Source: Octopus sinensis
Taxonomy: Eukaryota
Direction of reading: 5' to 3'
Assembly: GCF_006345805.1 (NCBI RefSeq)
Contig: NC_043011.1
Span: 34,546,464 to 34,610,463, forward strand
Length of the DNA stretch: 64,000 bases
Shown piece by piece: positions 651 to 55,872 of this stretch. A model generated the notes under the pieces. It ran no database searches, was not told where the DNA came from, and was given only the letters and a program-made list of their open reading frames with translations. The translations under genes and the position numbers were made by a program. How positions within the stretch are numbered: position 1 is the stretch's first letter; the number at the start of each line of letters is the position of its first letter.

Positions 651-1092
<442 letters not shown>

Positions 1093-1113
1093 CGTTTACT
1101 TTATATTTTAGAC

Positions 1114-6048: not shown

Positions 6049-6231
6049 TCGGAACAAAATCGCTGTAAATTCTGTTAATCGTAATGTCTAACATAAAATG
6101 AAATAAAATGCATCACACACACACACACAGATGGTGATTTTATATCTCCTTGTGTTTTAAATAAAAATTGTTTGTTACTTGTTGCTTTGTTAGTTTTTTA
6201 ATATTTTATTTCTTTATTCATTTATTATATA

Positions 6232-7030
6232 CTAGCAGCATAGCCCGGCGTTGCCCCGGTATGTAAGAGCCCCTAGTAGGCAACGACTAATCCCAATCTA
6301 GTCCTTTCCCTCTAGGGAACGAAGTTGCATGTGTAGGTTGCAATGTCTTCTCTTCACTCCCAAATAACTATCAAACAGCTCTCGATAATTCAACCCAACC
6401 AATTCCTACCAGGAAGAAATTACATTCGAGACTTTACCCCCAACACCGCCACTTCTGCTAATAGCTGCTGCAGCCGCAAGTTATTCGAATACTTTTTTTG
6501 TTTACACTTTCTTTATAACTACCACCCCAAACGTTTTACCTTAAATTTTTGACGTACCCTTGGACGCTACTTGCAAACTCTTGGTTTATTATAAACCGCT
6601 TTTGTCGTGTGCATCAAAAAACCTTTTCCATTCGTTTGTTCAGTTTGGTCACTTTTGACTTTTTCGTTGTTGTCACTCACATTGCTGCCCGCTTTTTTTG
6701 CCGTTTTTGTACATTTTTATACATTTTGGGATACTTACCCCACGTGTTCCGAGAGTTAAAAAGGTTGAGTTGCGTCCCCTAGACAGTCTGTAGAAAATGT
6801 GTTGCATATAAAAAGCTTAGATTCTCGACCCATGTCGAATTTATCGATTCTTTTTCAGAACTGGGGGAACTTTTCAAAATTTTCGCTGCGTTAGTTTTGA
6901 ATTATGACATTGGGCTATGTGTGTGTCAAATTTCATCAGAATCGGTTGAAAGCCGTGGTCAGGGTGAGGGTACAACCTGACAGACACACAGACACACAGA
7001 CAGACAAACTGCCGTTTATATATAAAGAGA
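6232..7030 (-). mobile_element. Non-autonomous Helitron, 799 bp
   Basis: Minus strand starts TCTCTTTATATATAAA and ends with a GC hairpin (CCGGGGCAACGCCGGG) then CTAG. Inserted between A and T with no TSD; the empty site is at about 22618 in the duplicate unit. Confidence 0.85.
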
Positions 7031-10000: not shown

Positions 10001-10353
10001 CGACGATGCTTTAGTTGTATCACACAATTGAGATGGCCATGCTATGGAATCCTTTAGAAAGTAATTAATTTCTACCTTCAAATGTGTGCGACATAAAATA
10101 TGTATTGATACCAACCTTGTTAATACTGGCTTTTTAAATGTTTCCTAAGATCTCGAAACTAATTCATATAAGTCCTTCCACAAAACTAAAGATTGGTTAA
10201 TGGGTTCAGCCTAATCATCATTCATGGATATCAATCATTAGCTTAGAAAATTCCATTTTCGCCACTTAGAGAGGAAATGAAGCTTAACTGATGTCATGTT
10301 TCCGCTGTAAGAACGAGTTGGAGACTCGGTCAAAAATCCACTCGGTAAGTCAG

Positions 10354-11208
10354 TCATGCATTCAATTGGCTGACATTCAGGAAAGTAACAAAAAAAAAGA
10401 AATTAAATTAAATTAGAAATAGAAAAATAAACTGACTAATCAACAAGTGACAAACAAATTATTACTATTTAAAACACAAGGTAGAAAATAAATAAGTACA
10501 GAAGTAAATAAATAAAATACACTTTTTTGTATAATACAGTTTATTTCCTCTTACGTTACATATTATGGAAAACAGGATTTAGAGTGATGTTTTTCCGGTT
10601 ATTTTCCGCTGCCAGTTTTCTTTATACTGAAAGAAAAAATCAAAGAAAGAATCCATAATTTATCGAATTGTTGTGAGGTTTGGCGGGAGAATTTATGCTT
10701 TAAATTGGAATTTTCTTATTTACCTCAAAATCAGTCTCCAGTTAAGTGCCAGTTACACACTGGGGTCGATGTAATCGACTTAATCCCTTTGTCTGTCCTT
10801 GTTTGTCCCCTCTATGTTTAGCCCCTTGTGGGCAATAAAGAAATAAGAAACGTTAGCACGCCGGCGAAATGCGTAGCGGTATTTCGTTTGTCTTTACGTT
10901 TTGAGTTCCAATTCCGCGGAGGTCGACTATGCCTTTCAGCCTTTCAGGGTCGATAAATTAAGTTCCAGTAGCGAACTGGGAGCGATGTAATCGACTGGCC
11001 CCCTCCTCAAAAATTTCGGGCCTTGTGTCTTGAGTAGAAAACAATATTTCATTCACATAGAAAGGCATGGTCGTGTGGTTAAAAAGCCTACCAGCAACCA
11101 CGTAGCTTCGGGTTGTGTTCTATTGCGCGACACGTGAGGTAAGTGTCTTCAACCAGATCCTTTAGTTGACAAATGCCAGTTGACCGACGGAAAATGTCAG
11201 GAGGTTTG

Positions 11209-11264
<56 letters not shown>

Positions 11265-12196
11265 GTTGTGTAAGTTGTGTAGTAACTTACAATTGACAAG
11301 CTGCTTTGCAAAAGAAATCCGGGAAAAGGGGTATTTCTTTGTGACAAACTTTCTCACAACCTTCACTCAGATCCAGGTTTTGGAGATGCTGAATTAGATC
11401 GTTGACTGCAATAATAAATTAGAAGAGATGTTGAATAATCATGTCTACAATGCTGAATTTTAGCATAAGCACAATGAATTAGCACAATTATGGGAAGAAT
11501 ACTGACCGAGAGGCTAAAATTGAGCGAAAACCAGCAACATTTAAATTACTGAAAGGCAGCAGACCTTAAGACACGACTAAATGCTAAACTTGCTTTGTCA
11601 TTCATTATTGTGTGATGTGGAGGAGCGGGATTATAAGACAGGGTTAATCATAATGGTATATACTGTGGGAGATCTTATGAGATTGTATGATATTGTAATG
11701 GTATTTAATTATGAGATTGTATGATATTCGTGCCTATTTCAGCGTCACCAGTGAAGTAGCGAGAAAAGTCATCGAATTTGCTATCGATAATACGAAATAT
11801 TGGTGGCTTACAAGTTTCACGGTGACAAGCAGAATAATTATTTCTCATTGTGGTAGAAAGCCAGCAATGTTTTGAGGTAAAGGAAAGTTGATTAAATCGA
11901 AGGTATTGTTCAACTTGTACTTGTTTTTTTCTCCACCCTGGAAGGATGAAAGGTGTAGTCGACTTAGCTGTATTTCGCTATGTTCTGATTTCGAATTCAG
12001 CCGACGCCGACTTTGCGTCTCGTCCTTTCGGGGTCGCTGAATCTAAGTACCAGTTGATCATTGGGGTCGATGCAATCGACTCTACCCCTTCCTCCAATTT
12101 CCGACCTTGATCCCATAGTAGGAAGGGATATTGTAAACGTAGCGAACTAGAAAATTCTAGATCATAGAAAAATAAAAATAAACGACAGACAGACAA

Positions 12197-12248
<52 letters not shown>

Positions 12249-12249
12249 G

Positions 12250-12299
<50 letters not shown>

Positions 12300-12576
12300 T
12301 ATTAGAATTATACAGACTTTTTGTTAGAGTCTGTTTTGTCACAGCTGCAAAAACCTTCGGTAACAAGCAAATCCGCACGACATTTCTTCACCTGGAGTTA
12401 AGCAACAACAACAACAACAACAATAACTGCTCTCATACCTATCATTCTGACACAGAAAATATTTCCATAAGGCTTTGTTTTTACTTACGATCCATTCTTT
12501 TGTCGACCTCCTCATCATAGAGGCTGGCAGAGAAGACGATGGGAAGCAATACTAAAAACAAAAGAACGACCTTCAT
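10354..12576 (-). CDS. Gene B1: secreted four-cysteine prepropeptide, 72 aa; complement(join(10354..10369,11291..11405,12489..12576)). [72 protein letters not shown]
   Basis: GT-AG sites, 88-nt and 115-nt exons as in A1. Last exon assignment is supported by an in-frame QL(N/D)A* conserved in three copies, with a silent first-base change in B3. Confidence 0.87.
10760..11040 (+). mobile_element. Composite SINE copies in B1 intron 2 (equivalent at about 26440-26730)
   Basis: Family motifs CTGGGGTCGATGTAATCGACTT and GGAGGTCGACTATGCCTTTCA. Confidence 0.8.
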
Positions 12577-12603
12577 GTCTGAAAAATAAAAATAAACGAC
12601 AGA

Positions 12604-12610
12604 CAGACAA

Positions 12611-12672
<62 letters not shown>
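12604..12672. repeat. (GATA)n in the 5' UTR intron of B1
   Basis: Direct reading; a second copy lies in the duplicated segment 12166-12332. Confidence 0.95.
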
Positions 12673-12673
<1 letters not shown>

Positions 12674-12751
12674 TATTAGAATGTTTACAGAATTTTTGTT
12701 AGAGTCTAGGGAAGAAATAAGAGAATTTATCACAATGCACTAAAAAACAAA

Positions 12752-12911
12752 ACTTACTGAATTGTGTATGGGACATGTTAAAAAAGAAAGAAGGCATTAT
12801 ATATCGTAATTCGTGGCTGGGTAACATCTGTGTTGCTCTCATCTAAGACAGAAACCAATGAAATCGATTGAAGAGAAGCGGAAAATGCTGACATAACCAA
12901 TTTAAAGATAA
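12752..12911 (-). promoter_or_regulatory. Promoter and micro first exon of B1
   Basis: Plus-strand AGATAA 12906-12911 and CATCTG 12825-12830; minus-strand TATATAA 12797-12803 and donor GTAAGT 12752-12757. Confidence 0.65.
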
Positions 12912-13039
12912 GTGTTGAGGAAAAATATACACAAACCATTTTGATACCAATAATTACGTTCTGAGTCATAAACGTTTGACTATGTAACTTTAACGAATTA
13001 TCAAATGAGTTGTTTGTGTTTCTCGCTTTTTGTGTGTGT

Positions 13040-13800
13040 AGGTGTTGCCCCCAGGTGCCTTCAAATAATATTTGAGATTTTCAAAACTGAGACAAAGTCA
13101 GCCGGTCTGACATGGCAGTTGCTATCCTTGTTTCTTCTATGGACCAGAATCATGAGTAATCTACATCTGATATCCGACCATACTGGAGTATTTCCACCAA
13201 CACATGACCCATTGAAACACACCATGGATGTGTTTCATGAGGTCTGTCTTAGGCACTTAAGCAAGGAACTATTCTGTTCTTTTGAGCAATATATCAAGTG
13301 GTATATAGGTAGCTCTGATCGGAAAGGATTTAAGATCATGACCAGTCAAATGTACACGTTATGGGACGGGATTGTTATTTCCCACTGATTACCTCTGGCA
13401 CTGGACATGATGTTAAACTTCCTCCGTGAGTGTGTCTCTGGATTGTGGTTCTAGGGATTTGACAAGAGAACAATCTGTTAGACACCCTTGTTTCCAGGTC
13501 TACACATCATCGGAAGAGAACTTGCTAGGGTCGCAGTTGTGGATTATTCAGTATGTCACGAAATTGTCTCAAGAACATCACAATGGACTGGGGACTGTTA
13601 GCTCTTTAGCTCCCCCTCAAAGAAAGGTATTCTCCATACAAATCCTGCATCTTGATAAGTACTGGATTCGTCACATTCGTTGCATCGGACCAATACATGC
13701 GTGAAGGATGAGATAATGGTTTGGTTCTGTATAAAACATGCCTACTATAATAACATTTATCGTGCAGTTTGTTCATTAAACCAAGACACCAGCATTAAGT
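13040..13800. repeat. Conserved upstream block, possibly an old LINE remnant; direct copies at about 29320-30180 and 44920-45690, inverted copy at about 14985-15720
   Basis: Recognisable sequence similarity by eye. Only weak, stop-ridden resemblance to reverse transcriptase, so the LINE origin is uncertain. Confidence 0.6.
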
Positions 13801-15840
13801 TTTAAGAGAAAAAGGTTATGAAGTGTTTGTTTCCCAAATTTGTGGGTGATAATATAGTTCTGTACTTTCTTATGAATAGTTCTATAAGGGAACTTTTAAT
13901 ATATGTCACCGGCGTCATTGAGGTGAGGAAAAATATCAATGACACCTCTAATTGACACATTTGATATATTATTAATCAGTATAAAGGCATAGCTTGGAAA
14001 AACTTACATGTAAAAATTTTCTTGTTCTGTACTTTACCAAATGTAATAAGTTGTCCTGAACTTTTCTAAGTGTAAAAGCTTGTCCTGTGGTTTTCCAGGT
14101 TTATAATCTCAAGAATACTATTTCCCTTGCTCGCATTTTGCCATGTAAGGAAATATGGGTGAGAATAGAAAGCATTGATTGTATAACATCTGCAATCGTT
14201 TTGGTTGGGTTTTGCAGCATTCGAGATAAGAGGAGATTGCTTACCCCTCACTCAGCTCTCCTTCATGTCTTTGATGAAAGAGACAGTGTATGTGTGGGCT
14301 TTCGTAACTATTTCGCAATGCAATATAGAGAATTCGTGAAGAAAAAGAGAAAGAAGAATCAACACCAGTTGATTTGGATAGCAGTACTTTATTTATCAAC
14401 CCTTGAAGAATGAAAAGCAAAGTAGACCTTGAAAGCAAATTTGCTCATCCTTGTGTTCTGCATTTAATATAAATCATAAAATAAAAGTACTAGCTTGTTC
14501 TGAGATGACGGCATCATGACTCTAGTATTAATATAATACAATGTTGTGTAAAAATAATAATTCATTTTAAAATCGCAAACTCCCAGAACACTGAAAATAG
14601 ATTTTTTTAGTATAACACCACTAAACTGTCAAACAAAGTATTGCTTTCAAATTTTTGACACAAGGCCAGCAATTTCGAGGGCTGGGTAAGTCAATTATAT
14701 CTGCCCAGTACTCAACTGGTACTTAATTTATCGGCCTCCGAAAGAATGAAAGACAGAGTCGACCCCGGTGGTATTTGAACTCAGAACAGAAGCATTTTGT
14801 CCGCGCGGTTTCGATTCTGACAGTTCGCCGCCTTACTGTAAAACAGAATGTTAATATCAAACCTTGGAACCGAAGCAAAACTCAGAGCTCATTTTATCTT
14901 ATATTCTCTCGTCGCTCCTACGAATAAGGATTAAACAAGATACAGTTGCACGAAGTCCTTCGCCACGAGAATTATGAAGGCAGTTTGAAAGCGTTTTGTG
15001 TTGGTGTCTTGGTTTGCTGAACAATCTGCACGGTGAACGTTATAGTAGGCATGGTTTGTGCAGAGCCAATCCATTCTCTCGTCCCCCACGCTTGTATTGG
15101 TTTGGTGCAACTAGTGCAACGAACTCAGTAGTTATCAAGATGCAAGATTTGTATGCGGAGTTACCTTCTCTTAGATGGTAATTGGCCAGCATATACTTGT
15201 GTAGAATATGGTCAGCTTCGACTGATCGTCGCCTTATGTAAACACTAGACACACTATATGCGAAAGGCAAAGAAGATGAGATAATCATGGTCGGAGCGCC
15301 TTTTGATCACAGGGCTTCATGATGCGGGTTAATTAGCGGTAAACCACCATGCCATCTCACAACGCGTACTTTGTAAGTGGACTGGATATGTTATGAGCCT
15401 CTGTAATCCTTTAAGCTCAGAAATCATATAAACACCATTTGATGTATCGCTCAAGGTGCGTAGCAGAACAGAGTAGTTCCTTGCTTAAGTGCCTACGACA
15501 GGTCTCAAGAAACATCTCCATGATGCACTAAATAGGTCATATATTGGTGGAAATACTCCAGTAAGATCAACTGTGGGATGTAGATGACTCAAGTTTCTGA
15601 TCCATGCAGGACAATGAGGGTGACAACTTCCTTATGCACGAGTAACTTCATGTCAGTCCGGTTGACTTTGTCTCGGTTCTGAAAAACTCGACTTATATTT
15701 GAAGACGCCCAGGGGTAGTTTGTACACCAGAGAAAAACGAAACAAACACGACTGATTAACTCTTTTAAAGTTGCGAAACCAAAAACTTATAGTTTACGGC
15801 GATATTGCTGGGAACCAAACAGCTGTGGGTCTATTTCTCT

Positions 15841-15992
15841 CAATACTTATCTTTAATTTACGTGGTTCAGTTGATTTCGTTAAGTTTACAGGGATATGAG
15901 AAAATGCAGATGTCAGTGAAAATTAATTTACTATATAAAACCTCTTGCTTCCCTTTTTTAACAAATTGTATCCCACATGCATTTCAGTGAGT
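15841..15992 (+). promoter_or_regulatory. Promoter and short first exon of A2
   Basis: TTATCT 15847-15852, CAGATG 15907-15912, TATATAAAA 15932-15940, donor GTGAGT from 15987. Confidence 0.65.
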
Positions 15993-16081
15993 TTTGTTTG
16001 TAGTTTTTAGTACATTTCAATGACATTCCTTATTTCTTCTCTCTAGCCTAGAACTTCATATTGACATACTCTAACAAGACC

Positions 16082-16171
<90 letters not shown>

Positions 16172-16192
16172 CGTTTACTTTATATTTTAGAC

Positions 16193-19100
16193 ATGAAGCT
16201 CGTCCTTTTGTGTTTAGTGTTGCTTCCCATCGTCTTCTCCGCCAGCCTCTATGATGAGGAGGTCGACAAAAGACTTTCAAGTAAGTAAAAGCAAATCCTT
16301 ATATAAACATTTTGTGTATCAGAATGACAGTTATGATATTGTTGTTGTTGTTTAACCCTAGGTCAACGCTGGTCGGACAGATTTGCCTGTTACCAAAAGA
16401 TTTGCAAAATAATGGTCTTCTTGAATTTGCTAGTCCATCACGCTTACAATAATAATGTTTGAGACGGTAGCCTAGCAGAATCGTTAGCATGCTAAACAAA
16501 ATGGTTAGCGGCATTACTTCCGGGTTTATATTCTGAGTTTAAATTCAGCCGAGTTCTACTTTGCTTTTCATCATGTTAGTGTTGATAAAATAAGTACCAG
16601 TTGAGCACGGGGCTCAATGTAATCGACTAGTCCCCTCTCCTAAAATTTCAGGCTTTTTACCAATTGTAGATAGTATTATTACTATTATTATTCTAGTTGT
16701 CATATTTTTATTGCGTGCTTCAACTGTGCAACCAATCGCATTTCTGTATTTGTTGCCGGAAAATAGTAATAATAGTACACCACACTCACAGGACAAATGG
16801 AATAACCTAGTCACTATAAATGAAGAGAGTACGTAGTAGGCAGTCAGAGAAAGTCGTATTTTTACTGGTTTTACTAAGTACACTGCATACTGAAGTGGGC
16901 GTTATATCAATCCAAAATTTTAAGGACTGTAACAGTGGCAACGCCGATTTAAACAACTCACGAGGAATTAAAAAAACTCGACGAGGATTTAAACAGCTCT
17001 CAAGGAATTAAGAAACTCGAAGAGGAGTTAATAAACTCATAATGTTGGTGTAAGAATTTTACTAACATCGTAAATGCATGGAATATTTGTTGGCAGGTTT
17101 GCTCGAGTTGTAAAAACAGCAACAACAACAGCTGAAAGAAACAACAACAACAGCAAGAGCAACAAAAGAAGCAACAACAACAAATCATATTTCGGCAACA
17201 AATGCTGCAATTACTAAAGTCGTCAGGAAAGTCAGAAAAAGTGTTCTCGCCAGACTGTTTCGCGAACTCCATAAAAGAGTTCAAATACGAACCTGACGGA
17301 GGAGTTACCTTTCGAAGCATACTACTGAAGATATGAGCAAATCTTCGAGAAAGAATGTAAAGATTGGGACGGCCGAGATTAAAACGCGCTTAATCTTGAA
17401 ATAAAAACCCCCAGATGCAACAGAACATGAACGTTGCATACAAAATGGATTTAGATGGATAAGTGCCAGAAGGAATTCGATGAATTGAAAAGTATTTTAA
17501 CCTCGGACCGACCATTGATACAATTTAATCCAAAGTTAGAAACTATATTGGCTGAAAATGCAAGTGAGTACGGTATAGGAGCCGTACATCTGCATAAATA
17601 TGGCGATGGTAGTACAAAGGCAATAGGCAATGCGTCAAGGTTGTTATTGCCAGCTGAAAAGAATTATAGCCAGGTAGAAAAAGAGGCGTTGGCAATCATA
17701 TTTGGTGTCAAGAAGTTCCATAGATTTATCCATGGAAGACGTTTCTGTTTTCAAACAGATCATCGCCCTCTTCTGACTTTATACGCGTCCAAAAAAGAAA
17801 TCCCAAGACATACAACAAATAGTTTACAGCGAGTGGGGCACTGCATCATTAAATTATGACTACAGAGTGGAGTATTTACCGTCGAAAAACCTAGGGCACG
17901 CGGATGGTTTGTCCAGACTGACACCAAAACACTGTGAGCCATTCGAAGATACGGTAATCGCAGCTCCAAGAGCTGAAGGTGAACTAAAAAAAAAACGTAA
18001 TGTAGAACGTGATACGAGAATTACCGGTAACCGTAGAAGAGATAAAGCGGAATGCAGTAAAACACTAGTTTATAAAGGAAACAAAAAGAACACTGTGGTC
18101 AATAAAAGAAAATAGAAACAGTTTGCTACGAAACGAAACCAAGACGTGAACCTATACTCAATGTGTGATGGCATACTTATGTATGCGCAGTGAGTAGTGA
18201 TGATGGAAACACTACAAAAAAAAAATGTGAGAATTTTACGTCGGATATCTTGGTATTTCAAGGCCGAAAGCTTTAATGCACAGTGACGTATACTGGCCGA
18301 AAATGGACAGAGAAATCGAAAATTTGGTGAAAGGCGGTAGAGGATATGCTCTAGCAGCAAAATTGCTCACTATAAAATATGAAAATTGGCCACACGTAGA
18401 TGTTACATGATTGAGACTACACATCGATTTCGCTGGTCATTTAAATTGTTCATACTGCTTAGTGGTAGCTGATAGTTTTTAGAAATGGTCTGAAATTTGT
18501 GAGTGTAAAAAAAATAACCTCCTCAACTGTGATAAGTTTTCTACACGAACTGTTTGCGAGATTTGGCATCACGGACGTGATAGTGTCTGACAATGGAACG
18601 CAATTTGTGTTTAGCGAATTTGAAAAATTTTGTGAAACGTTCGCAGTAGAACATAAGACCACTGCGCCATACCATCCCAGATCTAATGGATAGGCAGAAC
18701 GCTTTGTCGACACTTTGAAGAGAGCCCTAAGAAAATCGAATGAGGAAGTCACAGATATGGTAACTCTACAACAATTTTTAAGAGTGTACCGTGTAACACC
18801 AAATCAGAATACAGCTGCAGGTAGCTCACCAGCGGATCTGATGTTTACAAGGAAAGTAAAATCAGTCTTTGATAAATTGCTACGTGGCAAGAAAAGAAAA
18901 AGTTTGTATGTGCTAATTATTATTATTGCAAACACTGCTCCTGTTGCTGATACTTTATTCGTAACATTCCGGCTTTTTGTAGCGTCACTGGCCGTTTGGC
19001 TATTTTTATAGTATACGAGTAAGTGTACTAAACAACAGTTTAGGTTGCATATAGTAATATCATTCGTTCAAACGCTACTAATTTATTAGTAGCCCGCCGG

Positions 19101-22100
19101 ATTTTTGCGGCATCACTGGCTGTTTGACTATTACTATTATATACACATTCGACTGTTTTCCGTTCTGGCAATCGGCACAAGGCTGGCTATCGCTGGTGAT
19201 TCACAAAATTGGTAAAATCACATGATACGGTAACACCATCCACCGGTGCAGACGATCATTTCATTAGTCGATATAATCCGTGCTTTTAGTCGGCGTGCTG
19301 GTAGAATCGTTAGCACGCCGGGAAAAATGCTGAGTGGAATTTTGTCCGTCCTTATTTTCTGAGTTCAAATTCTGTCGAGACCGACTTTACCTTTTTTCCT
19401 TTCGGGGTCCACCAAATAAGTACCAGTTGAGCACTAGGGGCGTTGTAATCGACTTAACCCCTACTCTAAAATGTGCCAACATTTGAAAACGACGTAGTCG
19501 GTGCTTTAATGAACGCTTATCGTCAACACAGGACGGGATCTCTGGACGTATTCTATCAGCGTTTTTCGTAATATGCGTACGATTTCTAATGATGGTTTTC
19601 TTTGTCTAATGTTTATGTGTAAATTTTGTTTGTGTAAAGTCTGCATGTCTTAAAGTTACATCATTGTATTTGTGAGCACGGTAATGCTTTGTAGGAGATT
19701 ATTCTGTTTATAAAGGCAGCAGGCCGGCAGAATCGTTACCACGCCGGGCTTAGCACATTTCTAGTCTCGCATACCGACAAGGTCGACTTTGTCATTTACC
19801 CTTCCTCTATTGATAAAATAAAATATCAGTCAAGCACTAGACTCGATGTAATCAATAAGACCCTCACCTCAAATTTCAGTTTTTGTGCTTTTAGTAAAAA
19901 GAATAGTTAGCACACCAGATAAAATGTTTAACGATATTCCTTCCGACTTAAAGTTCTAAGTTCAAATTCTGCTGGGGCTACTTTGCTTTTCATCGGCTCG
20001 GAGTCGATAAAACAAGTACTAGTTGAGCACTGAGGTTGACATAATCAACTTCCTTTTTCCCTCAACAATTTGCTGGCCTCGTACCGAAATTAGAAATAAT
20101 TATTCTGCTTATCACTAAAACCCTGTAAATCGCCAATATTTCATATCATTGATTGCAGATTCGATTACATTCCTTACTACCTAACTTATGACGTCGAGAA
20201 TGGCATGAATGTCATGAAATCTCATACACTTCTCCGTTATAAATGCCATATTGACTTTCCCTGTGTTATAATTAAAATTCTCGAAGTCACTCAATTAAAC
20301 ATAAAAAACAAATTATGTTCTATTTAGTTACATTATCTTAAGTTCTGCTGGCTTCCAATATAAAATGCCGCAGTTTTCGATTCTATTTTCCGTTCTCCGA
20401 CTTCATTCTCTCTCTCAAACTGTTTCGATTCCTTCTACTTATGTTAAAATCCAACATTAGAAACATTATTTCAACATTTGTTCTAATTTCTCTTGCAGTC
20501 ACCGATGTAATTAATCACATTAAACATCTGAATCTGGGTGACGACTGTGTACAAGCTTGTGAAGATAACGTTCCAAATTTCTGGGCGTTCTTGTGTGGAG
20601 CAGCCTGTAGAATGTAAGTCAATACACAATGTATACACACACACGCACGCACAAAATTTGTTATTTTAATGACAGTACTACGGAACACGTTTCAACGTAA
20701 AATTTCTCTGCCCGTGTTACTTTAGCGTCCCTTCAATTTTTTGTAAAATTGATACATTGCTAAAGCAGGGTCCATTTGATATTTATTAATCCGTATAAAT
20801 TCTTAAATCACGTTATACTGCACCATGTACTCAGCATAACGTTTATACGATGTTGTTGTATTTAGGAATGGTCATTTTGCCAGTTTAGCCAATAAAAACA
20901 CACGCACTATATATTTGGTGTTAATTTGGTTCAGCTTTATTTATTTTTTACATTAATCTTAATCTTATTTCGGCCAGAGTTCTTTCGTCACACTTCTGTG
21001 ACCTCATCAGTGGTCCTTTGCTTTCTTCTTTCTTTCTTATTTGTGTGTTTCTCCTTACTAACGGTCAGCTCAAGCAAATTAACACCAAATGTATAGTTCG
21101 TGTGTTTTTATTGGCTAAACTGGCAAAATGACCATTCCTAACTACAACACCATCTGTTTCAACACACGATTTCACATCGAGAATCTTGCAAAACAAATAT
21201 ATAAACGTTTATACGATGGAAATTAAACAAAGAAAATTAAAAAATAAAGTGAAATGTTTAGTTTTCTATTCTTAACCAGAAATCGAAACCTTAGTCTAAA
21301 TTTTTCTGTAGGTTTCTATTGTTCTCAGAATTCTTACTTGGAAATTCATACTCCATTCAACTTAGATAAGCCTTATTCGTTTACTGAACATCTTAGGTTA
21401 AATTTAGTCCATCTCACAATAGCTTTTACCTTCTCTGTTCTTCGGACCTACTTTTGGCTTTGAAACATGTATAAATACAGAGCCCCAAAAGAATTCTGTC
21501 AACCAGTACCTTGCCGGAAGAACATGGCTCTCTTTTACCGGCCACCTTCTCGGAGGGACATCTGCCTTTCACCCGACAACCTGCTGGAGGAACATCTCTC
21601 GCATCTTGCCGGAAAAACACGCCTCTCTTTTGTCCAGCATTTCGGCGAATGGATATGTCTATCTCTTTCTCGTACGTCTATCTCTTTCTAGCACAAATTT
21701 CTCTCTTTCACGCGACACCTTGCCGCAGGAATATCTCACTGTCTCTCACTGGGCACCTTGCCAGAGGAACATGACTCTCTTTCGCTGGGCACCTTGCCAG
21801 AGGAATATATGTCTTTCACCCAGGACCTTGCCAGAGGAACATGACTCTTTCTTTTGTGCGGCATTTAGCGGATTTAACATGCCTGTCATTCTCTCACCCC
21901 TGGAAAACAGCCAACTACTATAGATTCTGTACACTGTCTCTAAGAAGACGAATAACAGTTACATGTATAAATTAATACACTTCTAAAACAGTAGATTTGA
22001 TCTTGGTCAATCTGCATAGAAAACAAGAGGGGAAGAACAAAGCTATTTCTAATACACTGCTTGTAAATTAATCAACTTCGAAAATATGGTCTGTTTACTA

Positions 22101-22435
22101 GATACGAACTGCTGTCTATTGTACAATATAGCACAGTATTCCAGGATTTCTGTAAATATCGGATTACTGGAAGTTAGATATCTTTTAGGAAGCGCTCTTG
22201 CTTCCAACTCGACATCAGACCACGGACATTTATACAACCAATGTAACTGATTTTTTAGATGAATTTTAAGAATTACAATGTAAAAGATAAATCTTGTGCT
22301 AAACGTTACGATATATGACGGCATTTCTTATTTGATAAACAATGCAAGAAGTACAATATTTAGTAAACTTTAGTCTAAATACTTTTCTTTTCTTTTATTC
22401 TTTTCAGTATCTTGGGCAAAGGAGACGTAAACTAA
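16193..22435 (+). CDS. Gene A2: secreted four-cysteine prepropeptide, 76 aa; join(16193..16280,20499..20613,22408..22435). Identical to A1 except C-terminus GKGDVN
   Basis: Exons 1 and 2 identical in nucleotide sequence to A1, one GGA>GTA change in exon 3, splice sites intact. Confidence 0.9.
16760..18900 (+). mobile_element. Degenerate, internally deleted Gypsy LTR retrotransposon in A2 intron 1 (leader, gag-like Q-rich part, RNase H, integrase)
   Basis: 17455-17859 reads ...ASEYGIGAV...NYSQVEKEALAIIFGVKKFHRFIHGRRFCFQTDHRPLL (RT/RNase H). HADGLSRL motif at about 17900. Integrase core IVSDNGTQF...HPRSNG*AERF at 18500-18720. Many stops and frameshifts. Confidence 0.92.
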
Positions 22436-25400
22436 TCGGAACAAAATCGCTGTAAATTCTGTTAATCGTAATGTCTAACATAAAATGAAATAAAATGCAT
22501 CACACACACACACAGGTGGTGATTTTATATTTCCTTGTGTTTTAAATGAAAATTGTTTGTTACTTGTTGTTTTGTTAGTTGTCTTAATATTTTATTTATT
22601 TATTCATTTATTATATATTGTTATTGCCGTGAATGAGTCAGTTGAATACAAGAGTTATCGAATGGATTGCTGATTGAGTATCCAATAGATCAAACCACGC
22701 CACTGAATCTGCTCGTTCCTGTGACGGAGACATGACATCGGTTAAGAATGTAACAGTTACATGAGTTCCTAGAGTATTCTCAAGCCTACATATATATTAC
22801 TGACCCAGCTGTTAAAACTGATATATTGAAAACATTCCACTTTCTACACCAATGCCAGTTTTCCAATTTTCCTAAGACATATCTTTCTGAATCATACGAA
22901 TATACGCTGAGAAGTTCTTGCAAGGTGCCTGTAAGCTTGTCTGGCGACCGCGTGGACTTCTTGTTTATTTTGAAGTGAATTCTAAGGCGAGGTTATATAA
23001 CCACTACTCTAGAATGTGGGTAGAAAACTAAAGCTATTGATTATTTTCAGACATTATTGAAGTACTTGAATCTAAAAGATCTAACATAAATTGTAAATGA
23101 TATCGCAGAAAAGATAGCTAGTTCATAGCTGGAATATTTGTTGAATCGGCACTAACTTGGGACGAAATAACAAAACGTCAAGAATAACAAAAATAACAAC
23201 AAAAACATAAATAACAGCAAAAACATTTCGGGATGGAGAACATTTATTATAATTTTAAAGTTTTTCGGGTCGCGAAGTGACAAAAGAATTAGAGCGTCGA
23301 CAAAAAGCTTTGTGGTGTATTTGTCCCGTGTTTACGTTCGTGGTTGCAGTCGCGCTGAGGTCAAGTTTGTTTTCATCTCTCTTATGTCAAGTATCGGATC
23401 AACTATAAGGACTAACTCCCAACCGCCAAAAATTGCTGATCTTGTGCTTCGATCAGAAACAATGATGGCGATCTGGTAGAATTGTTAGTGCGCCAGACAA
23501 AATACCATGAGGCATTTCTTCCGACTCTTCATGTTCTGAGTTCAAAATCCGTCGCTGAGTATTCTTTTGGTGTCGATAAAATAAAATACCTGTCATATAC
23601 TGGAGTTAACATAGTCAGTTAACCCTCTCCTTTCAAAATTGTTGGCTTTGTATCTAAACTAGAGACAAGTCATTCTCAGATGAGTTCTCCTGGGATGTTT
23701 CCAGCCATGTAGGTCCTCTCTCTATATATTCCTATTACAGGCACAGGCCTGACATTTTAGGGGAGCAGAGCTAATCGATTACATCGACCCCAGTGTGCAA
23801 CTGGTACTTATTTCATCGACTCCGAAAAGATGAAAGGCAAAGCCAACCTCTGCAGTCCATGTATGGATATGTCTTGGCGTCACTCAACCACTGCACCTCC
23901 TATGAGCATACAGAGCTCAACAATAAGTGATAACCTATCTAGAATAAGATCAACTCTAGGCAAAAAAGAAGGTTGTTGATCGTTCCTACTTCAGTGTTAT
24001 GTATCATCTAAAATGCACAGAGTAGAGTTATGGGAAGATGCATTCTACAGTCTTTAAACAATTTGTAAAAATTAAACACTTGAGGAAACAGTTCTTTACA
24101 TCCAATACTTCCAGCAGTAGGAGTCTGTAAGAATTACATGGCAAGCGGAAACAACTGAAAAGCTAGCAATATCGGGAAAGGACCTAAAAGGAGGCAAGCA
24201 GGCAGAGTCGCTAGCATGCCGGACAAAATGTTGAGTGGAATTTCGTCTGTCATTACACTCTGATTTCAAATTCCGCTATGGCTGACATTGTAGAGTAAGA
24301 TTTTGTAGTGTAATATATGGATACATAGTAATCTAATTCGGAGGAATACAGTGCAGAGTCCTATGTAGTTGAAATCCAGGAGATCTGAGCGATGAGCTTA
24401 TTTCATGAGGAGTATAGAAAGTAAGGAGGTACGAGATGAGGAGGTGAATATATTTATTTAACCACTTGTCGTCTTGAAGGTTACGGCTATTTCGCAGCCT
24501 TCGTCATTTAGTTATAATTTCAGTGTAGATTACATTTACATGTCTGCAATAATATGCGTGCTACTCTAGATTTCTTTATCTGTTCTGATTTGTAAATATA
24601 CGACTGCATTGTATAATGCACGCGCGCGCGCACACACTCACACGCAGACGCACAGACACACACACTCTCACGCACACACACGAGTGTGTGTGTCGCTAAG
24701 ATTGAACTACGTTTAGCAAGAAAAAAAATTAAGAGACAATAACAAAATTAAGGAATGGTCAAACCTGTTCATAAGGACTTACAGTTTATTGGAGATATCT
24801 TGGTTCAAATTCAATCGCAATAAAAATAAACTGAAGTTCACACAAATTGTGGATTTCTATCCATCAGCATCGAAATCACTGCTACGTAATGTATTAGAGT
24901 TTGCCCGTTTATTTATAACCATAGGTGAACAAAAAATACAGCTCTTTATACGTAAGACATTGTTATTTAGTAACAGATCTATTTGGACTAAAAAAGATAA
25001 CCAAAGCAAACTATTCGATGTCCCAATGGGTTCGTATCATAGCGTGGATATATGAGATTTAGTTGGTTTATACATATTAAATCATGTTAATTCGAAATTC
25101 CCTATCTATAACACCAGGATATACTGCGATGATGCTTTAGTCGTATCACACAATTGAGATGACCATGCTATGGAATCCTTTAGAAAGTAATTAATTTCTA
25201 CCTTCAAATTTATGCGACATTAAATATCTGTTGATACCAACCTTGTTAATACTGGCTTTTTAAATGTTTCCTAAGATCTCGAAACTAATTCATATAAGTC
25301 CTTCCACAAAACTAAAGAAAACCTTAAATATATTAACAAGCACTCTTGTCACCCACATTTTGCTTTTAAAAAGATAGTTCCAAGTATTAGCCGTTGGATC

Positions 25401-25998
25401 ATTCCTTTCTTCTACAGAAATATTCGAAAAGGCTGGCCATTATTATAATAAGGCCCTACAGAATAGCTGCTTTATGATAAAATCCTACAACCCTCACCTC
25501 CTCTATCATCTAGTTGTAAGAATAGGCCTCAGAAAGTTTTATGGTTTGGCCACACTTTCTCCCTTAAATGTAGAAATGAGTTGTGATATCACTGGTGCCA
25601 AGCTATATCAGCCTTTGTCTTTCCCTTGAATAACATTGGTAGCGTGGAGATCGGGTTTAGTGTACGCAAATGTATTGAATGTTTCTGATCATAGGTCTGC
25701 TTGATCAAGATTTTGCTACCTTAATTGCTGGGTGTATTTATTTTACGGTCATTTACATTGTAAGTTCAAATCCGGCCGATATCAACTTTACCTTTCATTC
25801 TTCTTAGGTTGAGCAAAACAATTAGTGCCTCATTCATGGATTGGTTAACGGGTTCAGTCTAATCATTCATGGATATGAATGATTAGCTTAGAAAATTCCA
25901 TTTTCGCCACTTAGAGAGGAAATGAAGCTTAACTGATGTCATGTTTCCGCCGTAAGAACGAGTTGGAGAATCAGTCAAAAATCCACTCGGTAAGTCAG

Positions 25999-27632
25999 TC
26001 ATGCATCCAATTGGCTGACATTCAGGAAAGTAACAAAAAAAAATTAAATTAAATTAAAAATAAAAAAATACACTGACTAATGAACAAGTGACAAACAATT
26101 TATTACTATTTAAAACACAAGGTAGAAAATAAATAAGTAAATAAATATGTACAGAACTAAATAAATAAAATACACTTTTTTGTATAATACAGTTTATTTC
26201 CTTTTACGTTACATATTATGGAAAACAGGATTTAGAGTGATGTTTTTCCGGTTATTTACCGCCGCCAGTAGCCCTTATACTGAAAAAAAAAATCAAAGAA
26301 AGAATCCAGTGTAAAGTTTAGCAATTATTGTGTTCATTGCATAATTTACCGAATTGTTGTGAGGTTTGGCGGGAGAATTTATGCTTTAAATTGGAATTTT
26401 TCTTATTTACCTCAAAATCAGTCTCCCGTTAAAAGTGCCAGTTACACACTGGGGTCGATGTAATCGACTTAATCCCTTTGCCTGTCCTTGTTTGTGCCCT
26501 GTATGTTTAGCCCCTTGTGGGCAATAAAGAAATAAGAAACGTTAGCAAAGCCGGCGAAATGCGTAGCGGTATTTCGTTTGTCTTTACGTTTTGAGTTCCA
26601 ATTCCGCGGAGGGCGACTATGCCTTTCAGCCTTTCAGGGTCGATAAATTAGGTTCCGGTAGCGAACTGGGAGCGATGTAATCGACTGGTCCCCTCCTCAA
26701 AAATTTCGGGCCTTGTGTCTTGAGTAGAAAACAATGTTTCATTCACATAGAAAGGCATGGTCGTGTGGTTAAAAAGCCTACTCAGCAACCACGTAGCTTC
26801 GGGTTGTGTTCTGTTGCGCGACACGTGAGGTAAGTGTCTTCAACCAGATCCTTTAGCTGACCAATGCCATCAGAAGGAATTTGACCGACGGAAAATGTCA
26901 GGAGGTTTGTATTGTGTGTGTGTATGTGTGTGTGTGTGCGCGAGCGCGCCTTCGTCCGCCTTCGCCCGCCTCCGGACGTCCGCCTTCGCCCGCCTCCGGA
27001 CGTCCGCCTTCGCCCGCCTTTCAGACGCCGCTGCGTTCTCCCCGTCCCTTTTGACGCACGCGTTTGCCCGCCTTCGCTCGCTCGCCCGCCGGCATCCGCC
27101 GCACAACAGCTCTTTATGTAGGGTCGTGGCCGAACGGCATAGGTGACCACCTGGAAGGAATGTTGTCGTCGCTCCTTTCTGCCAACGGTTAGCTCCCCTA
27201 TTGCCGGTGCAAGGTCGACTCTACACGGCTGGCGCGTCCTCGAATCTCTGCCGCCGTCGCACACCGCCCGCCTTTCAGACGCGTTCCCTCGACGCCCGCG
27301 TCTGCCCGCCTCTTCACGCCCGCCTTTCAACGCTCGTAGGTTCGTCCTCTCGCAATCGAACCACTTTTCGTTACCACATTTTCTCTCGCCTCCTCCGACC
27401 CCCGGCCTCGTATTCGCAGGCGAGGACCCGATCAGGTTACGCCGCTGACCTCGTGTCGCGTCGCCGCTGGCGCGGCGGACGGGCTAGCCGTCGCTTCCCG
27501 TTCCGCCACAGGCGACGCGGCGTCACTGAAAGAGAGCGGTGCCGTGTCTGTCCCTTCTTCCCTGGACAGAACCGTGGCTTCAACTCCGGGTTTCGCTGCC
27601 TCGTAGCGTTTCTACCTCTTCTGCAGCTTCCC

Positions 27633-27689
<57 letters not shown>

Positions 27690-28834
27690 TTGTGTAAGTT
27701 GTGTAAATTGTGTAGTAACTTACAATCGACAAGCTGATTTGCAAAAGAAATCCGGTATAAGGGGGAAATCTCTGTGACAAACTTTCTCACAATCTTCACT
27801 CAGATCCTGCTTTTGGAGATACCGAATTAGAAAGTTCACTGCAATAATAAATTAGAAGAAATGTTGAATACTCATGTCTACAATGCTGAATTTTAGCATA
27901 AACACAATGAATTAGCACAATTATGGGAAGAATACTGACCGAGAGGCTAAAATTGAGCGAAAACCCCCAACATTTAAATTACTGAAAGGCAGCAGACCTT
28001 AAGACACGACTAAATGCTAAACTTGCTTTGTCATTCATTATTGTGTGATGTGGAGGAGCGGGATTATAAGACAGGGTTAATCATAATGGTATATACTGTG
28101 GGAGATCTTATGAGATTGTATGATATTGTAATGGTATTTAATTATGAGATTGTATGATATTCGTGCCTATTTCAGCGTCACCAGTGAAGTAGTAAGTAAA
28201 GTCATCGAATTTGCAATCGATAATACGAAATATTGGTGGCTTACAAGTTTCACAGTGACAAGCAGAATAATTATTTCTCATTGTGGTAGAAGGCCAGCAG
28301 TATTTTGAGGTAAAGGAAAGTTGATTAAATCGAAGGTATTGTTCAACTTGTACTTGTTTTTTTCTCCACCCTGGAAGGATGAAAGGTGTAGTCGACTTAG
28401 CTGTATTTCGCTATGTTCTGATTTCGAATTCAGCCGACGCCGACTTTGCGTCTCGTCCTTTCGGGGTCGATGAATCTAAGTACCAGTTGATCATTGGGGT
28501 CGATGCAATCGACTCTACCTATTCCTCCAATTTCCGACCTTGATCCTATAGTAGGAAGGGATATTGTAAACGTAGCGAACTAGAAAATTCTAGATCATTG
28601 TTTTGTCACAGCTGCAAAAACCTTCGGTAACAAGCAAATCCGCACGACATTTCTTCACCTGGGGTTAAACAACAACAACAATAACTGCTATCATATCTAT
28701 CATTGTGACACAGAAAATATTTCCATAAGGCTTTGTTTTTACTTACGATCCAGTCTTTTGTCGACCTCCTCATCATAGAGGCTGGCAGAGAAGACGATGG
28801 GAAGCAACACTAAAAACAAAAGGACGAGCTTCAT
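25999..28834 (-). CDS. Gene B2: secreted four-cysteine prepropeptide, 72 aa; complement(join(25999..26014,27724..27838,28747..28834)). [72 protein letters not shown]
   Basis: GT-AG sites, conserved exon lengths and phases, all four cysteines and KR retained. Confidence 0.87.
26939..27634. mobile_element. GC/CpG-rich insertion of about 700 bp within the (GT)n tract of B2 intron 2; class unassigned
   Basis: Absent from the equivalent uninterrupted (GT)n of B1 and B3. Contains three 24-bp tandem repeats TCCGCCTTCGCCCGCCTCCGGACG. Confidence 0.65.
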
Positions 28835-28868
28835 GTCTGAAAAATAAAAATAAACGACAGACAGACAA

Positions 28869-28908
<40 letters not shown>

Positions 28909-28909
28909 C

Positions 28910-28978
<69 letters not shown>

Positions 28979-29054
28979 TAGAATGTATTCAGACTTTTTG
29001 TTAGAGTCTTGGGAAGAAATAAGAGAATTTATCACAATGCACTAAAAGACAAAA

Positions 29055-29209
29055 GCTTACTGAATTCTGTGACAAAATAAAAAGAAAGAAGGCATTATAT
29101 ATCGTAATTCGTGGCAGGTTAACATCTGTGTTGTTCTCATCTAAGACAGGAACCAATGAAATCGATTGAAGATAATCGGAAAATGCTGACATAACTAATT
29201 TAAAGATAA
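29055..29209 (-). promoter_or_regulatory. Promoter and micro first exon of B2
   Basis: AGATAA 29204-29209, CATCTG 29123-29128, minus-strand TATATAA 29095-29101, donor GTAAGC 29055-29060. Confidence 0.6.
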
Positions 29210-30997
29210 GTGTTTGGGGAAAATATACACAAACCATTTTGATACCAATAATTACGTTCTGAGTCATAGACTTTTGACTTATGTAACTTTAAAGAATTAT
29301 TAAATGATTTCTTTTTGTTTCTCGCTTTTTGTGTGTGTAGGTGTTGCCCCCAGGTGCCTTCAAATGATATTTGAGATTTTCAAAACTGAGACAAAGTCAA
29401 CCGGTCTGACATGGCAGTTGCTATCCTCGTTTCTTCTATGGACCAGAAACTCGAGTAATCTACATCCAATATCCGACCATACTGGAGTATTTCCACCAAC
29501 ACATGACCCATTGAAACACATCATGGATGTGTTTCATGAGGTCTGTCTTAGGCACTTAAGCAAGGAACTATTCTGTTCTTTTGAGCAATATATCAAGTGG
29601 TATATAGGTAGCTCTGATCGGAAAGGATTTAAGATCATGACCAGTCAAATGTACACGTTATGGGACGGGATTGTCATTTCCCACTGATTACCTCTGGCAC
29701 TGGACATGATTTTAAACTTCCTCCGTGAGTGTGTCTCTGGATTGAGATTCTAAGGATTAGAGAAGAGACTTGTTCATTCCACATTCATCGAATCGACAAG
29801 ATAGTCTAGGTTAAGATAACCTCTGATAAAGCAACCCTATTAACGAAAGTCACCCTTGGTCCCTGTTAGATACCCTTGTTCCCAGGTCTACAAATCATCG
29901 GAAGAGAACTTGCTAGGGTCGCAGATTATTTAGTATGTCACGAAATTTTCTCAAGAACATCACAATGGACTGGGGTCTGTTAGCTCTTTAGCTCCCCATC
30001 AAAGAAAAGGTCTCTCCATATAAATCCTGCTTCTTGATAAGTACTGGATTCGTTGCATTCGTTGCATCGGACCAATACATGCGTGAAGGATGAGATAATG
30101 GTTTGGTTCTGCACAAAACATACCTACTATAATAACATTGATCGTGCAGTTTGTTCATTAAACCAAGACACCAACACAAAACGCTTTCAAACTTTCTTCA
30201 TAATTCTCGTGGCGAACGACTTCGTGCAGCTTTGACTTGTTTATTCCATATTCATCGAATCGACGAGATAATCTAGGATAAGATAACCTCTGATAAAGCA
30301 ATTCAGCAGTGAGCGATTTATCTTTGTTTTTTTTTTTGACACATATCGTATAAGTCTTCTACAGTCGAAGTTAACAATGCACCTCATGCATTATATATCA
30401 GCTGACCATGGCAAGATATTTTCTATATGACTGGATCTTAATTATACGCACATGTATCTCTTCTCCACGCCAACGATGGTTATTAAAAAAAAAAAAGCTG
30501 TCGATTTGGGCTGAACCATCATTCTGATTCATGTCACTATGCAATGAACCAGAGATGATAACAGAAGATATATTGCCTGTTCTTCTCACAGTTCCGTCAA
30601 TCTATTGTTCTCGTTCGGTACATTTGTATGGAGACCGAAAGTAATAAAGATAACAGGATTGTATCCTACATTATCTTTTTGTATTTTGAAATGGTAACCT
30701 CATCGCACTTAACAAAATTGTGGTGAAAGAATCAATAGATACATAGACATGATTCTACATTTTCTTGCGAAGGAAAATCCAGTGTTTTAAAGGGCAAATA
30801 ATTCTATTACGCCATGTATTGTATAGGCGTCTGTATACTAGAGTTTTCAAGTTCAAATCCTCTCTGATTGAACTTCCAGTTATCAACTAAATCGCATGAA
30901 TGCGGTTTGAAAATTTGCGTTAAATATTTAACGTGGATATTAGAAATGTTCTAATTATCAAACTAGAATTTAGGTACATACATGCATGCATACAAGG

Positions 30998-39316: not shown

Positions 39317-39412
<96 letters not shown>

Positions 39413-49127: not shown

Positions 49128-49378
49128 GACGACAGTAGGCTTTGAAAGGCGGCGGGCTGGCAGAAACGTTAGCACGCCGGGCGAAATGCTGAGCGATATT
49201 TTGTCAGCCGTTACGTTCTGAGTTAAAATTCCGCCGAGGTCGACTTTGCCTTTCATCCTTTCGGGGTCGACTAAATAAGGACCAGTTACGCACTGGGGTC
49301 GATATAATCGACTTAATCCGTTTGTCTGTCCTTGTTTGTCCTCTCTGTGTTTAGCCCCTTGTGGGTAGTAAAGAAATA
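49128..49378 (+). mobile_element. Near full-length young Octopus-type SINE inserted in the LINE 5' region
   Basis: GGCGGCGGGCTGGCAGAAACGTTAGCACGCCGGGCGAAATG...CCCCTTGTGGGTAGTAAAGAAATAG, closest to the window consensus. Confidence 0.88.

Positions 49379-54207: not shown

Positions 54208-54264
<57 letters not shown>

Positions 54265-54761: not shown

Positions 54762-54828
<67 letters not shown>

Positions 54829-55809: not shown

Positions 55810-55872
<63 letters not shown>

Follow-up and report, generated by a model that had tools for sequence, protein, structure and literature searches.

Substitutions concentrated in the mature-peptide coding sequence of one recent duplicate in an octopus gene cluster

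Introduction

Why would the exon that encodes a mature peptide change faster than the introns beside it, and do so in only one of two recently duplicated genes? This question is raised by a 64,000-nucleotide stretch of the Octopus sinensis genome (RefSeq assembly GCF_006345805.1, contig NC_043011.1, positions 34,546,464 to 34,610,463 of the forward strand), in which tblastn places six genes of a single peptide family, A1, B1, A2, B2, B3 and C, that together span 57 kb. This whole stretch is referred to below as the window, and all positions are counted from its first letter. The original prediction for the locus, made from the sequence alone, held that the mature-peptide exon of B1 and B2 diverges about ten times faster than the adjacent intron, almost entirely through amino-acid-changing substitutions, and attributed this pattern to positive selection acting mostly on B2. 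Here, we report that the acceleration is real, that it is specific to B2, and that it is confined to mature-peptide coding sequence. As to its cause, we favor selection-driven remodelling of B2 after duplication, to which we assign a probability of roughly 0.55; selection, in preference to the import of an older sequence, is what we infer from the balance of evidence set out below.

Divergence between B1 and B2 in coding and non-coding sequence

Both genes lie on the minus strand (B1, 12576-10599; B2, 28834-26252) and, like the other four members of the cluster, consist of 88 + 115 + 28 coding nucleotides (nt) that specify a 76-residue precursor, with no insertions or deletions (indels) among the six. 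The second exon, which carries the core of the mature peptide, aligns without gaps between B1 (11291-11405) and B2 (27724-27838) and differs at 16 of its 115 nt. Fifteen of these differences fall within 12 replaced codons (D>F, Q>R, H>Y, N>K, L>Q, G>D, K>R, E>D, I>F, F>I, A>S and Q>R), the remaining one is silent (CTC/CTG), and the four cysteine codons are unchanged. The first 340 nt of intron 1 beside this exon, in comparison, hold 5 differences (11427, 11438, 11469, 11533 and 11534), such that Fisher's test of exon 2 against these 340 nt returns an odds ratio of 10.8 (p = 7e-7). The exon encoding the signal peptide and propeptide differs at 4 of 88 nt, and B1 is separated from B3 by 5 nt in exon 2. 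All of these counts agree with those first reported for the locus.

The two generalizations that had been drawn from the counts need to be narrowed. Specifically, the tenfold ratio of exon to intron divergence holds against what is the quietest 340-nt stretch of the intron, but it is sixfold when measured against all of intron 1 (21/908) and fourfold against pooled non-coding sequence (112 differences in 3283 aligned nt around the B genes, or 3.4%). Likewise, the description of the changes as almost all non-synonymous is accurate in that 15 of 16 lie in replaced codons, but this is near the neutral expectation because ~80% of sites are non-synonymous; averaged over mutational pathways, exon 2 contains 14 non-synonymous and 2 synonymous changes over 94 and 23 sites, respectively.

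Each of the six genes also possesses a third coding exon that was overlooked in the original prediction, comprising 9 codons and a 3′ untranslated region (UTR) with an AATAAA signal. In B1 and B2 this exon differs at 6 of 28 nt (K>R; K>A via three adjacent changes; S>G; and one silent change), compared with ~2 differences in the 140 nt that surround it, and it is significantly more diverged than the pooled non-coding sequence in its own right (p = 3.6e-4), which makes it an independent replicate of exon 2. Taking both exons together, the mature coding sequence of B1 and B2 differs at 22 of 143 nt (15.4%) versus 112 of 3283 in non-coding sequence (p = 1.6e-8), with divergence elsewhere amounting to 2.3-2.7% in introns, 4.5% in the signal exon and 3.4% in the pooled non-coding set. 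When all 9.7 kb of alignable duplicate was scanned, the only other 115-nt windows with at least 14 differences were located at microsatellite indels and represent alignment noise. The most diverged clean non-coding stretch has 10 differences in 128 nt (7.8%), and even if this value is taken as neutral, mature coding sequence is still in excess (P = 0.0017). Moreover, the excess of exon over intron divergence is absent from the two control comparisons, A1/A2 and B1/B3, with A1 and A2 showing a single coding difference in 231 nt.

Duplication, conversion and the lineage of change

The gene pairs reside in a tandem segmental duplication of ~16.4 kb, in which copy 1 (1003-13469) holds A1 and B1 arranged tail to tail and copy 2 (16082-29768) holds A2 and B2. 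Over 9.7 kb, the two copies are 2.9% diverged, with the A part at 1.1% and the B part at 3.4%, and the spread in non-coding divergence is threefold, with some 300-nt stretches identical (heterogeneity p = 1e-10). This unevenness suggests that conversion has acted since the duplication. It is conceivable that the near-identity of the two units over long stretches, the abundance of microsatellites in the region and an odd GC-rich insert inside a microsatellite 89 nt from exon 2 of B2 instead reflect an assembly artefact, either a read chimera that placed sequence from another paralogue or haplotype in the B2 exon region, or a single haplotype that was falsely duplicated. We view this as very unlikely, as B2 is collinear with B1 on both sides of exon 2, of exon 3 and of the insert, the excess is found at two separate exons and not at one junction, and the units differ by many indels and transposon insertions of the kind typical of true paralogues.

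The third B gene provides a means of assigning the changes to a lineage. B3 (40485-38529, minus strand) contains a sharply bounded tract of ~750 bp (39370-40115, equivalent to 11212-11961 in B1 and 27644-28394 in B2) that extends from the final 555 nt of intron 1 through exon 2 into the beginning of intron 2, and that is 1-5% diverged from B1 and B2, versus 10-15% in the downstream and 20-50% in the upstream flank. Judged from this sequence pattern, B3 is clearly an older paralogue, and the tract clearly reads as gene conversion. In line with these values, the start-codon exon of B3 (40398-40485) is unlike that of B1 at 21 of 88 nt, whereas its exon 2 (39449-39563), which lies within the tract, departs from B2 at 15 nt and from B1 at the 5 nt noted above. 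The coding part of B3 exon 3 (38529-38556) is unlike that of B1 at only 2 of 28 nt, compared with 12% in its flanks, which indicates that this short exon is under constraint.

The conversion tract offers a three-way comparison in which the lineages are equally old. Here, changes unique to B1, B2 and B3 number 6, 7 and 8, respectively, in 552 intron nt. The corresponding numbers are 2, 12 and 1 in exon 2, where two further sites are three-state, and 0, 6 and 2 in exon 3. Tajima relative-rate tests are significant for the exons (p = 0.002 to 0.0004) and not for the intron (p = 0.8-1.0), and changes unique to B2 occupy 18 of 143 coding nt versus 23 of 1523 non-coding nt (p = 8e-10). Comparison with the Octopus bimaculoides protein A0A0L8GV61 leads to the same assignment without recourse to B3: of 38 exon-2 residues, 3 in B1 and 13 in B2 depart from this orthologue. 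Among the 18 sites with a B2-unique change, moreover, 13 have a B1/B3 base that C shares, and 9 have one that A1 shares. Since B1 is near the O. bimaculoides orthologue and the B1/B3 states often recur in paralogues C and A1, the burst belongs to the B2 lineage, as had been proposed. A donor for the B2 exon states was also sought within the window and rejected, the B2 bases agreeing with those of A1 at 4, and with those of C at 2, of the 18 sites. One derived codon, CAG (Q), is common to B2 and B3, and conversion probably involved the B2 lineage before its burst, to judge from this shared state.

With respect to the character of the B2-unique changes, no clustering beyond what their density predicts was evident, and an excess of transversions in the exon was not significant (p = 0.16). 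Six of the 18 are A>G, and among the 15 replacements five are of the K>R, Q>R or S>G kind that A-to-I recoding produces. Coleoid cephalopods commonly employ A-to-I RNA editing; the proportion of A>G changes is near the value predicted from the non-coding transition rate, and the resemblance may be coincidence. A separate observation concerns the 5′ end of the gene, where the start-codon exon together with ~400 nt around it is 86% identical between the oppositely oriented A1 (973-1382) and B2 (28978-28562), which suggests, on the basis of this alignment, a 5′-end exchange between subfamilies A and B.

Tests for positive selection and competing explanations

We consider first the evidence that bears on selection. 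Using the Nei-Gojobori method (NG86), exon 2 of B1 and B2 yields 2.0 synonymous (Sd) and 14.0 non-synonymous (Nd) differences, for a dS of 0.092, a dN of 0.166 and a dN/dS ratio (omega) of 1.8, and exons 2 and 3 combined yield Sd 3.5, Nd 18.5, dS 0.13, dN 0.19 and omega 1.4. The corresponding omega is 0.26 for the signal exon of the same two genes and 0.38 for the mature sequence of B1 and B3. Likelihoods were obtained with a maximum-likelihood (ML) branch model (MG94xHKY, star tree, three sequences, 39-47 codons). When the intron tract serves as a neutral clock, with branch lengths held in common, omega for the B2 branch (omega_B2) is ~12 and omega = 1 is rejected (p = 2e-7 to 2e-9). At the non-coding rate of this lineage (23/1523), ~1.7 non-synonymous changes would be expected on B2 and ~15 or more are seen (P = 4e-10). 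The combination of a preserved reading frame, preservation of every cysteine and so few silent changes was reached in 1.8% of neutral simulations, and the 15 replacements in B2 avoid all 7 family-invariant positions of the mature peptide (P = 0.054).

Several observations, both here and in the alternatives discussed below, weigh against this interpretation. Codons alone do not reject neutrality: beside the modest NG86 values given above, omega_B2 is estimated by ML at 3.2 for exon 2 or 1.6 for exons 2 and 3, and likelihood-ratio tests (LRT) against omega = 1 give p = 0.32 and 0.53, respectively. A silent share this low is also not unusual in simulations that incorporate the non-coding transition bias (P = 0.17-0.23). 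Significance against omega = 1 appears only with the adjacent intron as the neutral yardstick, and gene conversion is found in intron 1 of the B genes itself, which weakens that yardstick; because conversion acts there and non-coding divergence varies threefold, the introns are an imperfect clock. The silent sites of B2 themselves appear elevated, with 0.44 changes expected at the intron rate as opposed to 2 that are clear-cut and ~3.5 after pathway averaging (P = 0.07-0.01), and this elevation is the reason that omega from codons alone is modest. Elevated silent sites are compatible in equal measure with selection, with multi-nucleotide mutations and with an exon that is older or imported, and multi-nucleotide events are known to mislead branch tests. 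The original interpretation is thus upheld as far as the rate excess and its restriction to one lineage and to coding sequence are concerned, but dN/dS is not significantly greater than 1, and positive selection on the B2 exon is best described as plausible rather than proven.

An omega that does not differ from 1 is also what would be anticipated if B2 were a decaying, unconstrained copy, its pattern a product of relaxed constraint and sampling noise. B2 has indeed changed three residues that B- and C-type proteins conserve (H36, G45 and F57), and its second intron has received a foreign-looking insertion of 711 nt. Nonetheless, relaxed constraint cannot raise a gene above the neutral rate, as the non-synonymous excess on B2 does, and B2 retains its reading frame, all splice sites, its dibasic KR site, its four cysteines and every family-invariant residue. 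Decay is for these reasons highly improbable.

A second alternative is that exons 2 and 3 of B2 were overwritten by sequence from a diverged B-type paralogue located outside the window, by means of short conversion tracts or a spliced complementary DNA (cDNA) template, in which case the differences themselves would be old. Conversion is active in this cluster and the B3 tract covers exactly exon 2, the silent sites of the B2 exons are ~5-8 times more diverged than its introns, some of the changes form tight groups (GAAATA>GATTTC and AAGAAA>AGGGCT), and B2-unique intron changes are somewhat denser near exon 2, with 4 inside 130 nt followed by 0 for 320 nt. For import to account for the data, however, two separate tracts must coincide with two coding segments and leave the 664-nt intron between them B1-like (2.7%). 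The window holds no donor, nor was a B2-like protein found among those of O. bimaculoides, and a donor evolving at the omega usual for the family (0.6-0.9) should have introduced ~6-7 silent differences and not 3.5. The donor would, moreover, itself need exons that outdiverge the flanking intron, which merely relocates the acceleration to another gene. We find import unlikely on these grounds.

It may instead be the non-coding sequence that is misleading. If B1 and B2 are older than their non-coding similarity implies, repeated conversion could have erased divergence nearly everywhere, with two mature segments escaping by chance or because selection acted against homogenized copies. The patchiness of non-coding divergence, with 0% over 300-nt stretches, 1.1% for the A part and 4.5-7.8% locally in the B part, is in keeping with such a history, as is a B2 branch length of 0.05-0.11 from codons alone versus 0.014 from the intron. 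Chance escape does not predict, though, that islands of divergence should match the limits of both exons to within ~20 nt, and it sits poorly with mature coding sequence exceeding even the most diverged clean non-coding stretch and with introns whose branches within the tract are equally long for B1, B2 and B3. Escape maintained by selection is a form of diversifying selection, and so offers no neutral alternative. Overall, homogenization strikes us as quite unlikely.

Selection on a changed peptide thus remains our preferred account, and the sequence of events that it envisions can be stated as follows. A segmental duplication of ~16.4 kb recently gave rise to the pairs A1/B1 and A2/B2, and a later conversion event of ~750 bp linked B3 to the B1/B2 lineage. 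B2 alone then gained 18-20 substitutions in 143 nt of mature coding sequence, replacing 15 of 47 residues, during a period in which its introns and flanks accumulated ~1.5%. The driving force would be selection for an altered product after duplication, that is, neofunctionalization through directional or diversifying selection on a secreted peptide, and some multi-nucleotide events probably contributed.

If selection did cause the burst, B2 constitutes a very young and well-bracketed case of a duplicate peptide gene being remodelled, with an ancestral-like sister (B1), a paralogue dated by conversion (B3) and untouched controls (A1 and A2) all within the same 60 kb. It would then be a convenient system for studying the origin of cephalopod secreted peptides and would flag an unstudied octopod family for functional work. 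If import or homogenization proves correct, the locus illustrates how conversion in a tandem cluster can mimic the signature of exons evolving faster than introns. A broader proposition is that octopods possess a hitherto unrecognized, lineage-restricted arsenal of helical-hairpin peptides with paired CX3C motifs (venom, antimicrobial or chemical-signal in role) that diversifies in toxin-like fashion by tandem duplication and exon-confined multi-nucleotide bursts under positive selection, B2 being one such burst caught soon after duplication; this we regard as speculative and, at present, doubtful.

Gene models

The B1 gene opens with an 88-nt start-codon exon (12489-12576, minus strand, as for all B1 and B2 features) that encodes 29 residues, consisting of a signal peptide and a propeptide ending in dibasic KR, with an acceptor (ttcag/ac) preceding the ATG and a gtaagt donor. 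Intron 1 (11406-12488), which was aligned with that of B2, is followed by the 115-nt exon 2 (11291-11405), flanked by a ttgcag acceptor and a gtaagt donor, whose translation (NDLIQHLQNLDLSEGCEKVCHKEIPLFPDFFCKAACQ) contains the CX3C...CX3C core of the mature peptide. The coding part of exon 3 (10599-10626) completes a split codon for T and continues with IKKTGSGK and a stop, with AATAAA ~75 nt downstream. In B2, the start-codon exon (28747-28834) departs from that of B1 by 2 silent changes and 2 replacements, exon 2 (27724-27838) is intact in its reading frame, splice sites and four cysteines, and the coding part of exon 3 (26252-26279) reads T followed by IRATGGGK and a stop.

Subfamily A lies on the plus strand, with A1 (1114-6048) comprising exons at 1114-1201, 4102-4216 and 6021-6048 and A2 (16193-22435) located in duplication copy 2; the sole coding change between them is a G>V replacement in exon 3 of A2. 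Gene C, used here as an outgroup, is on the minus strand (53105-56887; exons 56800-56887, 55908-56022 and 53105-53132). The third exon has the same layout in B1 (10626-10599), B2 (26279-26252), B3 (38556-38529), A1 (6021-6048), A2 (22408-22435) and C (53132-53105), namely a tttcag acceptor, 1 nt that finishes the split codon, 8 codons, a stop and AATAAA ~75 nt further on. In B1 it lies ~660 nt beyond exon 2 on the downstream side, and the other five genes have it at the homologous position; among the family members of other octopods, most carry a matching C-terminal tail.

If the exon-2 donor is read through, an in-frame stop results (TT/GTAAGT, read as CAA TTG TAA), and the O. bimaculoides model A0A0L8GV61, whose 68 residues end in 'QL', is by this reasoning probably such a read-through and hence incomplete. 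One sequencing run contributes two near-identical transcripts with different ends, CKM in P0009 and CKIIFQQ in P0017, which look to be the unspliced and spliced versions, respectively, of a relative. A further O. bimaculoides protein, A0A0L8GVL7 (P0004), fits the A genes past the signal exon only in a shifted frame (22407-22475 and 6020-6088) and is apparently mispredicted. Weak tblastn matches to the family at 47879-47953 and 53087-53149, consisting of a fragment that includes CxxxC (E = 0.05) and one that resembles a signal and is interrupted by a stop (E = 0.08-0.13), may be relics of decayed copies.

The peptide family and its predicted product

A protein search recovered four uncharacterized O. 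bimaculoides proteins, the best of which, A0A0L8GV61, is 84% identical. A profile search of 1.8 billion representative proteins returned only 14 matches at E <= 0.001, of which 11 are clear family members and the three weakest (P0013-P0015) look spurious. The matches originate from O. bimaculoides, Octopus vulgaris, Argonauta hians, a sequencing run and, at the weakest end, the clam Mya arenaria, and all are annotated as 'hypothetical'. By this distribution of sequence matches, the family is octopod-restricted and uncharacterized. A literature search on the accessions and on octopus cysteine peptides produced no paper mentioning the family, and the loci of two family members in O. vulgaris contain only more distant paralogues and no A, B or C genes, and have no overlap with the window. 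In that species, members of the family are located on OX597831.1 near 42.0 Mb. A look-up of the reading frame in exon 2 of B2 retrieved no record, and scanning metagenomes with a pattern for exon 2 gave no match.

Conservation across the family is concentrated in a small number of positions. The paired CX3C motif is invariant in all 16 aligned members; in its full form (C-x3-C-x11-C-x3-C) it is invariant together with A65; L42 and F60 are near-invariant, and the signal peptide is invariant as well. A short acidic propeptide ends at the dibasic K26-R27 site, which is invariant or nearly so, and is followed by a mature peptide of ~49 residues. No Pfam family was matched, and a sequence search of the PDB identified no significant relative, with the non-significant matches including the 45-residue walnut vicilin peptide 7lvg (E = 1.9). 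An AlphaFold2 model of low confidence (mean pLDDT 63) contains three helices in the mature part, with each CX3C motif in a helix of its own (46-53 and 59-67), and a Foldseek search with this model returned no match. Taken together, we read the product as a probable secreted, proteolytically released and disulfide-stapled helical peptide, with secretion and stapling predicted from the precursor sequence and the model.

Other elements in the window

The insertion in intron 2 of B2 (26924-27634) occupies 711 nt within a (TG)n run, 89 nt from exon 2 on its downstream side, and has no counterpart in B1 or B3. Its G+C content of 64% (62-68%), in a genome of ~35% G+C, makes it the only stretch of the window above 52%; its CpG observed/expected ratio is 1.35, and it contains a short internal repeat (cgccttcgcccgcctccggacgtc). 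Searches of this insertion matched neither Rfam nor any plasmid; no reading frame in it is convincing, and a look-up of its frame elsewhere retrieved no record. It may be DNA of foreign origin, a repeat of an unusual kind or an oddity of the assembly.

Across the whole window, scans for Rfam families and for tRNAs likewise returned nothing. Just past gene C, a satellite array with a 139-bp unit begins (57782-64000) and runs off the end of the window, comprising ~45 copies that are up to 98-99% identical. The window also contains nine copies of a dispersed repeat of ~170-230 nt, three of them in the second introns of the B genes, one per gene (10830-11091, 26520-26781 and 38922-39183), and six elsewhere (e.g., 1393-1565, 2891-3063 and 49147-49319); the repeat resembles a short interspersed element, and ARAGORN finds no tRNA-like head on it. 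By eye, 17455-17859 resembles a fragment of retrotransposon reverse transcriptase/RNase H and lies in sequence that only unit 2 has (16854-19021), and 32369-32854 resembles a helicase-like fragment derived from a transposon. No unique gene outside the family was found in the window, its long reading frames being transposon-derived or repeats.

Comparison with known systems

[quoted passage not shown] The octopus cluster shares several of these features, being composed of tandem duplicates that encode small proteins, predicted here to be secreted and disulfide-rich, in which the cysteine framework is kept and, between B1 and B2, mature exons outdiverge the introns and the signal exon and short multi-nucleotide groups of changes are confined to exons. 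In contrast to the snake genes, only one of three B copies is accelerated and its sisters are under purifying selection (omega 0.38), the octopod dN/dS is not significantly greater than 1, and both fold and phylum are unrelated. Nothing ties the octopod family to venom.

Conotoxin superfamilies encode the signal, propeptide and mature regions of a molluscan secreted precursor on separate exons, a division that the octopod genes share. A conotoxin-like pattern had been suggested for the present locus, and it is seen between subfamilies A, B and C, where dN is 0.09-0.13 in the signal/propeptide exon and 0.47-0.63 in mature sequence. It does not extend to B1 and its orthologue, in which 3 of 38 residues of the mature exon are changed between species versus 8 of 29 in the signal exon; because the mature exon is the better conserved of the two, hypervariability does not characterize the family as a whole. 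Conotoxins also have a different cysteine framework. Among other molluscan peptides, MgCRP-I of Mytilus galloprovincialis (PMC4558851) has six cysteines in three bridges versus four in paired CX3C motifs here, and no sequence similarity between the two was found.

With respect to architecture, the signal peptide followed by a dibasic site ahead of the predicted mature peptide recalls, at the sequence level, the precursors of neuropeptides and prohormones. Helix-loop-helix peptides with paired CX3C motifs include the plant alpha-hairpinins, vicilin-buried peptides and cystine-stabilized alpha/alpha peptides of animals. The octopod peptides share with these the C-x3-C...C-x3-C motif and, in the low-confidence model, the placement of each CX3C in a helix, but they have no significant sequence or fold match to them and possess an additional predicted helix at the N-terminus as well as the C-terminal tail that exon 3 encodes. 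The cluster is, in this light, a new example of a known evolutionary pattern, occurring in a new and unstudied octopod gene family.

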